A DNA stretch of 64,000 nt. Origin: Styela clava (Eukaryota). Both the position numbers and the translations under genes were made by a program. The notes under the pieces are model-generated. The model worked only from the letters and a program-made list of their open reading frames with translations. It was not told the origin of the DNA and searched no databases. Position 1 is the first letter of the stretch. Every line of letters begins with the position of its first letter. Below, piece by piece: positions 1 to 52,986 of this stretch. Where the stretch lies: positions 18,042,001 through 18,106,000 of the forward strand of contig NC_135252.1 in NCBI RefSeq assembly GCF_964204865.1, in the 5' to 3' direction.

Positions 1-3000
1 GGAAATAACAACAGTGGTAATGGGAATAATTCAAAAAATACGTATGCTGCATATAACAAGAGATTGTCACTAGATGAAACTCACAGGTACGATACTAAAG
101 TTTTTCGTTTCTCGAATATTAAACTTCATTGCTTCTTTATAGGAGCCCAAAGCGTCATGTCCCAACCGACCTACTTGCAATGCACGATTATAGTTTTATT
201 TGATGTATGAACGGAATAAATAGATATGAATTTTGGGTAACGGATATAAATCTGCATATCACCTGCAGATAAAAAAGCCTTGAAACATTTTTTTATAAGT
301 CAAAAATAAACAATATATATGTGATTTTTGACCTAACTACGAGCCACCGTTGTATATTGCAGAATATTTCTTGTGACTTCTACACCAACTAAAGAAGGTG
401 TTTCATTCGGTGTTAGTGACGCACTCGTGGTTGGGAAACAGCTTGCAGGTGATTAAAAAAAGAAACGAAATATAACTTTCGATTACTTTGTCAGAATGAA
501 TGAGAAAATAAAGACTGAATGAATGAAAAAATAAACAAACTTTAACATCTGATTTCTATCAGTTCGCAAACACCGCAAAAAAAGTTGCGCATAAGCTATA
601 ATATATTAAACGAGAATATCGGTCAGAGACCGAAGAGTTATCGATCGAAAGTTAGGCGGTCCCCCAAAACAGCGCTCTTACTCCATAGTGACACCTTGTG
701 TCCCATCACTAATTAATTAATACCTCGCTTATTATACGACATAATTCATCCAAATAGGCTTTTGGTACGACATATGATGAATGCATATGCAAAATCTGGA
801 GCAGATTCAATCTTGCTTTCGTGAGATATCGCGTGCTTCTAACAGACAGACAAAGAGACAAACAGACAGACAAATACCTATCAACATACTTACCGATTAA
901 AATCGATAAGTAATTAGGGTGGTCAAAACTGCGGCCCGCCAACACATTCCGTGCGCCCGAAAACAATTTTGGCGTACACTACTAAACCATTTGCAAATTG
1001 TATTTATTAGCACGAACAATTTTGATTTATTTTCTAACTTTTCCAACTGGTAGTAGTCCTTTTCTGACCCCGATGTCGGGATTAATGTTTGTTAAAATCA
1101 CGGAATTTCATTGTTGTATCTCTGAAAAGGTCAAGACGATGGCTATATGGGAATGACGTTCCGTGATCAATAAAAGGAGAATGAATTGTCTTGCGCATAC
1201 ACGACCTTTTCGTTTGAATAGACGTTTTGTGCCTTTATTTCAGTCAAAACACAATTTTTAAGCGTTGGCCACGCGATAGCAGTCGATGTTTTGAGCACTT
1301 CTGGGTTTTCACCGACTGCGGCCCGCGAGACCTCCCTCAGAGGTTTTTGCGTCCATTCAAACTCGCAACACTGGACCACCCTGTCTTGAATAGTTCTACT
1401 AATCTATATAATAATATATTGTTGCAGATGAGTGGAAAACTTTTCTTATTATTGGATTGACCGTGGTTGTTTTCATATTGCTAGCTGTTGTAATCTTTTT
1501 CACAGTCAGGTATTTAGCTTTTTACTACGATCGATAGGTTGGAATAATTAATTTTAGGACAAATAAAATTGTTGAATAAGATTAGAACAATAATCCTTAA
1601 CTGCTACCCTTGGAATACTACTTTAATTTTTTTGTAAACGTGGAAGTTGATTAAATTACCGAATTAAATATTTCATGGCGTAAATCATGGCGTATAATTT
1701 GATACGCAGCAGAAAACAGAAGTATGGCTGAAGTAAACTGGGTTATTCGATTCGAATGCAAATTGTGATCGACACATAAAACTAAGTACCGTTTTTTCCT
1801 CCTTCTCTGGTGTAACCAAAAGATTTTGTTTAACTGCAATAGACAAAGAACAAAATCTAACAAGAAAATCGATCAAATAGTTCAATATCGAAACAATGAA
1901 CAAGGTAATGACAATCACGTTCCTGAATTTTTGATTATCAGAAGTTTTATTTATTCGAAACGTATTAATATGCAGTAAATGAATATGATAAAACCTACAG
2001 ATAACTTGTAATTAGATTAACTGTACAGTTTCACTGCATTATTGAACGAGTATTTTTATTAAGCAGTTGAAGAAGAAGAAATACCAAGCACAAATGTTCC
2101 ACTGAGTAATTTTGAAGATTATTACAGAAATCTATTTCATAATGAGAAAGCATTGTTTCGCGAACAGTTCAAGGTAATCTGAATCAAAGTTGAGAAAATT
2201 GATTTTATTTATACAAAGTATGTTTGAATAATTATTTTAGCATGTGGTAAATACAAAAAGATTATAGCGTAATCATGAATTTTGGATTGGTATCGTTTTT
2301 ATCTAGATATAACTTTTTTTTAGAGAATAAAAATTGAATCAAAAGCAAATATGAAAAGTACAACGTTCGCATCTGCTCCTGAATTGAAGAGGAAAAATAG
2401 ATATAGAAACATATTACCATGTTAGTGCAAATTATTTCTTTTGAGTAGTGCATTTATGAGATGATCAAATTTTATGTAATATCATCATTTTCTTTAAAAG
2501 TATACGATGTATTTATACTATTTGCACTTTGAACAGAGCTCTTGGCCACAGTTTGGTAACACTTTCCGTTTGGCATTATATACCCGATTCAGCAAATAGT
2601 GACTGAGGTGGCTGACATATTATTTAAACTTGAGATTTCAATCAGCGATATTAGTTTAGTCCAACACGTCAGCCACTCGGTTACCGCGCCCTTACAGTAT
2701 TTAAAGTTTGAATATATGTTCAAATTTTAAACATCATTTTTTCACAAATGATTTAAAATAACATTGCCAGAACCAAAGAACATCTAAATATCTAAAGTTT
2801 GTTGTCTTTCTTATAGATGACGAAACTCGTGTTTGGATCAAAGCTAATGACACTGGATACATCAATGCATGCTACGTTAATGTAAGTGGTGTTTTAAATA
2901 CAACTATGATTTAAACTTGATAATTCACACTCTTGAATTCATATTGAAAATAGATATTGAACTAGTGTTGGGGTTGCTTTAGCATCATTATTTTGGCCTC

Positions 3001-51400: not shown

Positions 51401-52986
51401 TTAAGTGTCTCCAGTGAACTCCCATCCTTGCTAAGCTTACAACTAAACATTTTCAATAAAGCATTAACAATTTTACTTATTCGTTTTAATTGACACAACA
51501 TAATTATTTTAATTATTGAACACGGACTGGCATATGGGTCGTTTTGTTATTATGTTGTTGTTGTTCTTTTTGTAACTAGTATTTTTGAACTACTGGATCA
51601 ATTGCTTTGAAATTGTAAGTAGTTATAGATTGTATTTTTCGCTAAAAGGCTATTACTTTTGTTTATTTCCGTACTACTACATTTCCATATATTTGAGCAT
51701 TGCTCTCATGTTTATTGTATTGCAGACTTGCCTGGAGGTTAGGTATGTGTACATTAATATAGGATTCTAATATGAAAGGCCAACGTCAACGTCTGTAGTG
51801 AAGATACACAATAAAACGCTTCAGCATCGCCAGAAACTGTCCGAAGTATAAATTGCGTCGATTTAAAAATGTTGAGTCATAGCTTTGAAAAATTGCCATG
51901 AATTATTTACAACCAAACGTGTAGTTAATTGGGAATTTCATTGTAACGGCACATATTGACTTACTTAAGGCTTTTTACGCATATTCACGTTGAAAAAATA
52001 ACATTTGTGGAATTAGGACGCCCCCGTGCAATAATAATTTAGGTGTGACGTTTTCAGCTTGTCAAGTTCAGTGTTGAATTTGTAAATTAGGTATATACAT
52101 ACATTTGTGAATTCTCCCTAACGATTTAAGCTATAATAATGATTGTGGTGTTGTTTTGTTGGAAAATAAAATGAGAAAACGATAGAACAGAAAATATTTA
52201 ATTAAAATTAACTACTAGACACAATAACACTCAAGTTCAAGGTTATTTTCTACAAATTTTGGGGCATTAGCCTAGGTCGCATATCCGAAGTATTATTCAA
52301 AAAAGCGCGCTCTAGCGACATCCCACGGGCTATAGCTCTAGCGTACGCAATTAAAAAGGCATGAGTGACGTTTTAGGGCCTAATGGTTGATGAGAAAACA
52401 ATTTGAAACTGACCGTACAAAATGACCTCAGAATGGTTGATAGGAATACTGCCAAACTTTACTAACACTGTTAAAGAGAACGAAGATAAGAGTAAACATT
52501 GAATAAATCATCACCCCCTGATTGTGTTGAGAACGTCATTTTTTATAGAGCTATCATCGAGTTGAACAAGACTTGATCCGCTTCCACACAAGGATTTTGC
52601 TCCTGACCAGGAATACGCAGTGTTGTAAAAAGTTAGTTTATAGAAGGGTCGGGTTACTGTCTTCCAAACTCCTAAAAAATAACAATCATTCATCACATAC
52701 ATTATCTGTAAATTGTGTAAGTTTTCGGGAATCGTATAGCATTATAGGTAACTTACTATGTTACTACCTTAAGCAAAACTACAAATTCAAAAGTATAACA
52801 TGTCAGTTGTATTTTAACATGATTTACTGAATACTTAGTAAAATGTGACATTGCCTAATGCAGACAACTTATTGTTACATATTATAACTATAAACACAAA
52901 AAAAGGTAAAAATATTCATTTCCAATACCTGAACTAGATGCTGCAAGGAATGTTAACAAAACAAAACAGCAATTACACCCGAACAT
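42268..52986 (-). CDS. Receptor B: paralog of receptor A, SP-CTLD-CTLD-Ig-FN3-FN3-RPTP-like juxtamembrane domain-TM-ITAM tail (17 exons, 802 aa)
   Basis: Exons: 52986-52929 (MFGCNCCFVLLTFLAASSS), 52671-52515, 51228-51136, 50126-50014 (EPS), 49267-49099, 49013-48895, 48760-48470 (Ig), 48237-48135, 47745-47625, 47511-47332, 46997-46790, 46529-46427, 44876-44745, 44345-44190, 43845-43760, 43136-42966 (TM), 42416-42268 (tail). All are GT-AG with the same phases as receptor A; total 2409 nt, open. Confidence 0.9.
45141..46407. mobile_element. hAT (Buster-type) MITE in intron 12 of receptor B
   Basis: TIRs caggggttctcaaa...tttgagaacctatg, a perfect 8-bp TSD aattagat and cggagccc subterminal repeats. 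Absent from receptor A (~19660). Confidence 0.9.

Follow-up and report, generated by a model that had tools for sequence, protein, structure and literature searches.

A gene cluster of the ascidian Styela clava that joins related lectin/immunoglobulin ectodomains to either a tandem tyrosine phosphatase or a four-tyrosine tail: a candidate system of paired receptors

The stretch of DNA of the ascidian Styela clava analysed here (hereinafter the window: 64,000 nucleotides (nt) of contig C3, NC_135252.1, positions 18042001-18106000) contains the gene for a receptor-type protein tyrosine phosphatase (RPTP1) and two genes, A and B, for transmembrane (TM) receptors with a short, tyrosine-containing cytoplasmic tail (hereinafter tail-type receptors), the ectodomains of which are closely related to that of the phosphatase. 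The DNA that was read for the map of the locus comprises the window together with 60 kb upstream and 160 kb downstream, 284 kb in all, and neither the window nor the flanks contain any N; coordinates outside 1-64000 are given in window numbering extended in both directions. Exon-by-exon tblastn over this region reveals 4 RPTP-type and 9 tail-type genes, in addition to pseudogenes, in the order RPTP2, C, fragments, RPTP1, A, pseudogene, B, fragments, D-E-F-G-H-I, RPTP3, RPTP4 (Table 1), and two further family copies lie to the left of the mapped region. The whole cluster, with the window in its middle, extends over ~285 kb and comprises at least 4 RPTP-type and about 11 tail-type genes. Thus, a preliminary description of the window, which envisaged a single receptor pair, gives way to a multigene cluster, although it was right that RPTP1 and A lie tail to tail and that pseudogenes are scattered among the genes. 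Across the cluster, one ectodomain design is combined, at a single phase-1 intron, with either of two interchangeable cytoplasmic cassettes, one consisting of a TM segment and a classical tandem tyrosine phosphatase, and the other one of an unrelated TM segment and a tail of ~85 aa with four tyrosines.

The phosphatase of the window is represented by a RefSeq model, XP_077967373.1 (P0161, 1198 aa), that maps exactly to the genome in 29 GT-AG exons, from -5402 to 8547, and links the exons of the shared ectodomain to those of the TM segment and of both phosphatase domains, D1 and D2. The Pfam Y_phosphatase profile matches this protein in 2 stretches (1.4e-130), the protein tyrosine phosphatase (PTP) domains match structures in the PDB at E 1e-103, and individual D1 exons match LAR, PTPsigma and CD45. 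With the HCX5R(S/T) loop, WPD and KNRY of D1, a single TM segment and a second PTP domain, RPTP1 displays the features of the classical tandem RPTPs; judging by these motifs, D1 is predicted to be catalytically complete and D2 to lack the WPD acid. The other phosphatases of the cluster, RPTP2-4, possess the full exon set from the signal peptide through the stalk, and an older full-length model, P0275 (1327 aa), extends from a signal peptide and a C-type lectin-like domain (CTLD) through the TM segment to D1 and D2. Orthology with CD45 was considered and rejected: in comparisons with the solved tandem PTPs, PTPsigma and LAR score 348-350 bits, RPTPalpha 344, RPTPepsilon 329 and CD45 320. CD45 sequences were the top-scoring vertebrate proteins, at ~31-34% identity, in a length-limited search, the ranking of which was shaped by the length filter.

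The models of the tail-type receptors A and B are local splice chains built from splice sites that are conserved with annotated paralogs. The boundaries of exons 7-15 of B coincide with those of RefSeq XP_077966858.1 (P0152), the start methionine of B has been located, and another model, P0154 (580 aa), contains the TM segment and the tail. In A, the exons follow each other in the order signal peptide, CTLD1 (3 exons), CTLD-like 2 (2), immunoglobulin (Ig) domain, fibronectin type III (FN3)-like region (6), stalk (exons 14 and 15), TM and tail. The TM segment (ITWAVVAGGILAVLSAIVCLCYV) includes no charged residue and is unrelated to the one encoded by the RPTP TM exon. In the tail of A, YETI-AEASNG-YEDI is followed by YEIA and YEDIL, and the four tyrosines are retained in every intact copy of the tail; 8 of the 10 intact tails fit the consensus of the immunoreceptor tyrosine-based activation motif (ITAM), YxxL/I-x6-8-YxxL/I, and in A and B, this motif, formed by the first two tyrosines, follows the TM exon in the spliced frame. 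The division of the family that had been perceived at the outset, with a TM segment and D1/D2 in the RPTP as opposed to an unrelated TM segment and an ITAM-consensus tail in A and B, is accordingly recovered in the exon models. The tails of D to I end in SQYETV, which resembles an immunoreceptor tyrosine-based inhibition motif (ITIM); those of A, B and C do not contain this sequence. A search of the protein database with the tail retrieved two S. clava proteins only, and at that sensitivity, the tail is undetectable in other species; with the TM segment and tail as the query, the matches in the ESM Atlas (MUC1, syndecan-type tails) scored no higher than 0.82, the level of chance.

The ectodomain of the family consists of a signal peptide, a C-type lectin domain, a second lectin-like module, an I-set Ig domain, the FN3-like region and the two-exon stalk. 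For RPTP1, most of this part lies outside the window: the 6.2 kb upstream of position 1 are collinear with the entire ectodomain region of A (74-84% nt identity), in the introns as well as the exons, and tblastx detects there, in open frame, homologous exons of the lectin-like, Ig, FN3-like and stalk parts. The expectation that the upstream exons of the RPTP are like those of A and B was thus borne out over the whole length of the ectodomain, with the exception of two CTLD1 exons that are missing from RPTP1 and the signal peptide that is missing from its model. Likewise, of the proposed succession of a signal peptide, two CTLDs, Ig and FN3, the first CTLD is a clear Lectin_C domain (Pfam, 1e-14 to 3e-18 on the paralog models P0151 and P0147) but the second one finds no match in Pfam; the N-terminal half of this module shows a weak similarity to CTLD1 in a local profile comparison (E 0.0013, probability 18%), with tblastn cross-hits at E 0.0009-0.006. 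The Ig exon is recognised as I-set (7e-12), and it was the only part detected when Pfam was applied to single exons because the lectin and FN3 domains span several exons; the domain calls rest on the NCBI paralog models. Most genes have EPN as the sugar-binding triad of CTLD1, as opposed to EPS in B and RPTP2, DPN in F and QPN in E, and YD or FD takes the place of WND; given this variation of the triad and the altered WND position, sugar binding by CTLD1 is uncertain. In a whole-library search with the Ig exon, giant multi-Ig proteins dominated and two family members surfaced. An AlphaFold model of P0151, obtained with a 13-paralog alignment, has a mean predicted local distance difference test (pLDDT) score of 39, and the Ig domain alone is confident.

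It is at the junction between the ectodomain and the cytoplasmic cassettes that the two types of genes part. Positions 1-140 of the window are 90.7% identical at the nt level to A (18792-18654, minus strand; E 1.5e-50) and 87.9% identical to B (44275-44137), and positions 181-500, which cover the second exon and both of its intron flanks, are 74-75% identical to 18537-18217 of A and 44010-43729 of B; the blastn homology of RPTP1 with A stops near position 500. What the preliminary description had reported of these exons stands for the most part. The 29-aa segment of exon 14 is identical to that of A in 26 positions, by a count of the three that differ, and the string quoted from the following intron comes after this exon in both genes. 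Of the two exons said to share a size of 86 nt, exon 15 is indeed of this size (phase 2 in, phase 1 out) in RPTP1, A and B, but exon 14 is 156 nt long in all three, the smaller figure being an effect of the window edge. The phase-1 intron that follows exon 15 leads into either cassette. In the tail-type genes, the TM exon measures 171 nt and is in phase 1 at either end, and the RPTP TM exon together with the next exon has 144 nt. In an alignment of exon 15 and 160 nt from 13 genes, the intron is homologous between the types for ~140 nt and then diverges at a common point near 585-600. This common breakpoint in 13 genes fits a single ancestral exon-shuffling event. Alternative splicing of one gene that would yield both tails was rejected given that the cassettes sit in separate genes, partly on opposite strands. 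As an observation in its own right, an in-frame stop is located 5 nt past the donor of this intron (GTGATTAA; positions 449-456 in RPTP1 and the same site in 10 paralogs), and the product of intron retention would end in GD-stop. In G and H, the donor of this intron is GC.

The evolutionary relationships within the family were addressed with trees of 14 ectodomain exons from 13 genes, divided into three segments, the grouping by tail type having been fixed before the trees. In the N-terminal segment, from CTLD1 to Ig, there are tail-type partners for each RPTP, namely D for RPTP2, B for RPTP1, E for RPTP3 (100/99) and the group of F, G, H and I for RPTP4 (100/99), and a single RPTP clade is rejected by the approximately unbiased (AU) test (p = 1.4e-54). 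In the middle segment, the FN3 region, the tail types are interleaved as well, and the AU test again rejects a single RPTP clade (p = 1.6e-5); in the stalk segment, the tree is not resolved and a single RPTP clade is not rejected (p = 0.18). Mapping of the tail type on the ectodomain tree, a test that had been named beforehand, thus shows the two types interleaved. The synonymous divergence (dS) between RPTP1 and RPTP3 is 0.49 in the N-terminal ectodomain and 0.19 in the PTP cassette; between A and F, the corresponding values are 0.44 in the N-terminal ectodomain and 0.24 in the TM segment and tail, and RPTP1 differs from B, its companion in the tree, by 0.14 in the N-terminal ectodomain. Because dS is higher in the ectodomain than in the cassette, the ectodomain lineages predate the cassettes that they carry today, and either cassettes or ectodomains were swapped between the types at least twice. 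The ratio of nonsynonymous to synonymous divergence (dN/dS) is 0.10-0.18 in the PTP cassette and 0.3-0.9 in the ectodomain, values that indicate strong purifying selection on the former. The vertebrate paired-receptor families display this same pattern, in which the ectodomains interleave across two conserved signalling ends. The interleaved trees are the strongest support for the idea that the Styela receptors are paired, without proving function.

Table 1. Genes and features of the family in the window and its flanks (window numbering; negative positions lie upstream of the window)
Feature	Position	Strand	Details
RPTP2		+	complete
C		-	tail-type, apparently intact
RPTP1		+	two CTLD1 exons absent
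RPTP1 signal-peptide exon	-5878..-5821		intact; CTLD2 exon at -3833
RPTP1 exon 14 (stalk)	-69..86	+	156 nt; model mapping; 90.7% nt identity to A exon 14
RPTP1 exon 15, last shared ectodomain exon	363-448	+	86 nt; phase 2 in, phase 1 out; aligned with 12 paralogs
RPTP1 TM exon	1428-1509	+	ends ...FFTVR; hydrophobicity scan, model mapping; conserved in RPTP2-4
RPTP1 juxtamembrane exons	1843-1904, 2067-2173, 2324-2420	+	model mapping
RPTP1 D1	2817-5211	+	6 exons; KNRY, WPD; HCSAGAGRTG split after HC, between 4668 and 4800
RPTP1 D2	5689-8550	+	7 exons, TGA stop at end; HCTDGAGRTG retained, WPD replaced
Receptor A	14428-27498 (coding 27498-14431)	-	tail-type, intact ORF; 17 exons, 805 aa, GT-AG splice sites
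A exon 14	18862-18707	-
A TM exon	15305-15135	-
A tail exon	14576-14431	-
A ITAM-consensus motif	14532-14491	-	YETIAEASNGYEDI, YETI-x6-YEDI
Pseudogene, tail-type, divergent stalk lineage	34361-38861	-	in-frame stops in several exons; without CTLD1 and Ig
Receptor B	42268-52986 (coding 52986-42271)	-	tail-type, intact; 17 exons, 805 aa
B exon 14	44345-44190	-
B TM exon	43136-42966	-
B tail exon	42416-42271	-
B ITAM-consensus motif	42372-42331	-	YETIAEASNGYEDI
Rearranged family fragments	57643-62197		TM/tail remnants on -; stop-containing FN3 and stalk exons on +
D, E, F, G, H, I		+	tail-type; D Ig exon shortened; E stop inside CTLD1
RPTP3		+	complete
RPTP4		+	complete

Which of the two types came first? 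The tail exon has 11 copies in the genome, every one of them within C3:17.964-18.199 Mb. The genome search yielded 16 copies of the stalk exon on C3 and 1 on C2, and 5 copies of the RPTP juxtamembrane exon at 2067-2173, 4 on C3 and 1 on C2, where it adjoins the stalk copy. Because the RPTP exons have a copy on C2 while the tail exon is confined to the C3 cluster, this distribution points to an ancestor of the RPTP type, with the tail gained within the C3 cluster, a direction of change that we infer. Proteins on another contig with the Lectin_C-Ig-fn3-PTPx2 arrangement (P0164 and relatives, 49% PTP identity) and lectin-headed RPTP models from Ciona and Clavelina agree with such an ancestor. The locus on C2 (C2:18420276-18421755, minus strand) is the sole place outside the C3 cluster with a copy of the stalk and the RPTP juxtamembrane exon, at 58% and 74% identity, respectively; it is a candidate ancestral RPTP-type gene and is perhaps the same as the ectodomain-only model LOC120335420.

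Some other features of the locus deserve mention. A dispersed, non-coding repeat of ~310-325 bp occupies positions 596-920 and recurs at -45269..-44940, at 40031-40333 and on many other contigs, with >40 copies in the genome at 91-94% identity; it is not tRNA-like according to ARAGORN, and because it is found at the same site of the post-exon-15 intron in RPTP1 and RPTP2, its insertion there is older than their duplication. Rfam and tRNA scans of the window found nothing. In A, the intron between CTLD1 exons 1 and 2 (24930-26430) carries an insertion of ~1.5 kb compared with B, with T/C-rich low-complexity runs and short ORFs, and related low-complexity sequence lies at the site of the CTLD1 deletion in RPTP1 (-5143..-4880), so that an unstable T/C-rich stretch may have mediated this deletion. 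The RefSeq labels of the family are limited to 'uncharacterized', 'RPTP alpha/C/F-like' and 'roundabout homolog 2-like'. The protein with the last of these labels, XP_077966860.1, combines exons from the 5' part of gene E with exons from the 3' part of gene F and bridges ~18 kb in doing so (the two genes lie to the right of the window, at 84338-109214); it is either a chimeric model or the product of read-through transcription. Three proteins of an older annotation, P0159, P0274 and P0275, have no exact gene match in the 284 kb, most of their exons being below 95-97% identity, which suggests haplotype differences or extra copies and hence possible polymorphism in cluster content; the cluster itself may be polymorphic between haplotypes.

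The N-terminal, probably ligand-binding part of the ectodomain has been repeatedly exchanged between the tail types, such that each phosphatase has a tail-type twin. An intriguing possibility is that twins recognise the same or very similar ligands. A ligand would then unite a tail receptor that is phosphorylated by Src kinases and read by SH2 domains with a receptor that bears its own phosphatase. Under this scenario, the phosphatase would be built in rather than recruited via an ITIM, and could either dampen the signal, by dephosphorylation of the tail, or prime it, by activation of Src. The family has what one would look for in a set of paired receptors, namely clustered paralogs, close ectodomains, different signalling ends and interleaved trees; the coupling of the twins in function is what we infer from these features. 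The structural and evolutionary parts of this proposal, taken alone, appear highly probable. When a lineage-specific cluster, interchangeable cassettes and functional pairing of twins are put together as one statement, it seems to us to deserve slightly more belief than doubt. A more specific version, in which several old ectodomain lineages keep both a phosphatase and an ITAM-tail version and one ligand, perhaps a microbial or allogeneic glycan, co-clusters the two on hemocytes, is tentative, and we would sooner question than assert it.

Several observations weigh against the pairing of twins, and many of them concern the tail. The ITAM regular expression matched 41 times in the 128,000 six-frame residues of the window, in an AT-rich genome, which amounts to a ~3% chance per ~85-aa tail, and because of this rate of chance matches, the motif by itself would be modest evidence only. 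The invariance of the four tyrosines is equally unremarkable, considering that ~37% of the C-terminal tail positions vary (chance about 0.16), and YxxI doubles as a generic endocytic signal. In E and F, a two-residue deletion leaves an x4 spacer, outside the ITAM consensus, and for the TM segment and tail together, dN/dS is 0.3-1.0, indistinguishable from that of the ectodomain. Some twins, moreover, look damaged, E by its stop in CTLD1 and D by its shortened Ig exon. The RefSeq models of B, C and H terminate just past exon 15, at the GD-stop described above, and could correspond to soluble receptors without a TM segment, that is, a regulated isoform, or to an annotation default; two other RPTP-type NCBI models (P0159, P0151) omit the TM exon. 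Finally, neutral gene conversion in a tandem array can produce interleaved trees without selection. A different account explains the cluster as a neutral by-product of a tandem array, whereby a lectin-headed RPTP family expanded, exon shuffling gave one copy a foreign TM segment and tail, and unequal crossing-over together with gene conversion later mixed the ectodomains of types that are otherwise independent; the tail-type genes could be, for example, lectin receptors for endocytosis or phagocytosis, with YxxI as their sorting signal, and be uncoupled from the phosphatases. Apart from the unconstrained tail and the short spacer, this account gains from the mosaic structure of the genes, the nearest relatives of which change along their length, from the many pseudogenes and fragments, and from the lectin-headed RPTPs of Ciona, Clavelina and other S. 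clava contigs, for which no twin is known. It does not readily accommodate the fact that old ectodomain lineages, of which there are at least three (dS about 0.45), have each retained both tail types, the strong purifying selection on the PTP cassette, or the persistence of seven or more tail-type genes with intact ORFs and all four tyrosines, and we regard it as rather unlikely.

The pairing within the window faces a difficulty of its own, namely the state of RPTP1. In CTLD1, the middle exon and the C-terminal one are gone from this gene but present in RPTP2, A, B and C, the splicing of the signal-peptide exon to exon 2 and on to CTLD2 is out of frame, and the RefSeq model begins at an internal methionine, without a signal peptide. 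It may be that RPTP1 is in decay, but constraint is not relaxed in its PTP part (dN/dS of 0.10-0.14 in comparisons with RPTP2-4); furthermore, all 27 downstream exons are open, with GT-AG splice sites, and if exon 2 is skipped, the intact signal-peptide exon is again in frame. That RPTP1 is a decaying copy and the pair in the window non-functional is a possibility to be taken seriously, even if we lean against it; it is compatible with the pairing of twins, which would then be carried by RPTP2-4. An artefact of assembly or annotation, in which collapsed or duplicated haplotypes or chimeric models mimic two tail types, might be suspected from the fusion of exons of the neighbours E and F in one NCBI model (P0155) and from the older-annotation proteins that match no gene here exactly. 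This is highly implausible, given that the paralogs differ by 5-50% and follow a fixed order on one contig of 25.6 Mb with no N in the 284 kb, that the cassettes recur 4 and 11 times with introns of their own, and that the exon chains can be followed without a break in the genome sequence, whatever the annotation. With these alternatives weighed, the paired-receptor reading appears to be the best explanation that the interleaved trees, the conserved PTP cassette and the common junction allow.

Comparison with known systems helps to delineate what could be special about the Styela receptors. Like the vertebrate KIR, LILR, Ly49, SIRP, PILR, Siglec and CD200R families, they are clustered, fast-evolving paralogs with near-identical ectodomains and two signalling ends, accompanied by pseudogenes, and as in those families, exchange of ectodomains causes the two kinds of members, activating and inhibitory ones in vertebrates, to interleave in trees. 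The differences lie in the wiring and in the ectodomain. In vertebrates, the ITIMs of the inhibitory member recruit SHP-1/2, and the activating member usually combines a charged TM segment with an ITAM adaptor, whereas the Styela counter-receptor has its own tandem PTP and no ITIM, and the tail-type receptor an uncharged TM segment and the motif in its own tail; the vertebrate ectodomains are Ig only or CTLD only, as opposed to the lectin, Ig and FN3 combination of Styela. CD45 (PTPRC) and CD148 (PTPRJ) are RPTPs that tune ITAM signalling and, like the Styela RPTPs, are classical receptor-type phosphatases; unlike the latter, they share their ectodomain with no ITAM receptor.

Among invertebrates, fester and FcoR of Botryllus are clustered tunicate receptors with cognate ITIM/hemITAM pairs (PMC12065747), and the Alr genes of Hydractinia carry ITAM/ITIM motifs (PMC9546547). 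Like the Styela cluster, these are clustered families the members of which differ in tyrosine motifs, but they have IgSF or sushi ectodomains and tails that carry motifs only, a phosphatase domain is reported for none of them, and no sequence relationship to the Styela genes was seen. Ascidians are stated to express CD45-like RPTPs, Src and Syk kinases and SHP-1, and in Botryllus, expression of Src and Syk family kinases is reported (PMC12065747). Another ascidian protein with ITAMs in its own tail is the A74 antigen of Halocynthia roretzi, a type I membrane glycoprotein of hemocytes with two ITAMs that is involved in phagocytosis and hemocyte aggregation and for which an association with phosphorylated proteins is reported (cited in PMC5465252). 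A74 did not appear among the database matches to the queries from the Styela family. Lectin-headed RPTPs as such are found elsewhere in tunicates. In Ciona, an 'RPTP epsilon-like' model combines Lectin_C, EGF and PTP domains, in Clavelina, a 'Lar-like' model combines Lectin_C, fn3 and PTP, and other contigs of S. clava encode P0164, P0166 and P0167, of which P0164 has the domain order Lectin_C-Ig-fn3-PTP x2 as in the cluster. These proteins differ from the cluster members in that their PTP identity is 34-49%, no tail-type twin is known and all are automatic annotations. In line with the preliminary description, according to which no such family had been described, full-text searches found no paper on this family, on lectin-headed RPTPs paired with ITAM receptors, or on any RPTP counter-receptor in paired receptors.

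The genomic part of these observations stands alone: two cassettes that were repeatedly swapped onto diverging lectin/Ig ectodomains at one phase-1 intron make a clean example of exon shuffling. To our knowledge, the inhibitory arm of vertebrate paired receptors always recruits a cytosolic phosphatase through an ITIM. If the proposed pairing is true, fusion of a phosphatase to a shared ectodomain in the closest invertebrate relatives of vertebrates would represent a second, independent wiring of paired receptors, a chordate alternative to the ITIM/SHP-1 solution. It would also be a natural experiment for the ideas on kinetic segregation and phosphatase proximity that originate from CD45 and CD148, and the members of this cluster would become candidate recognition receptors for ascidian hemocytes.

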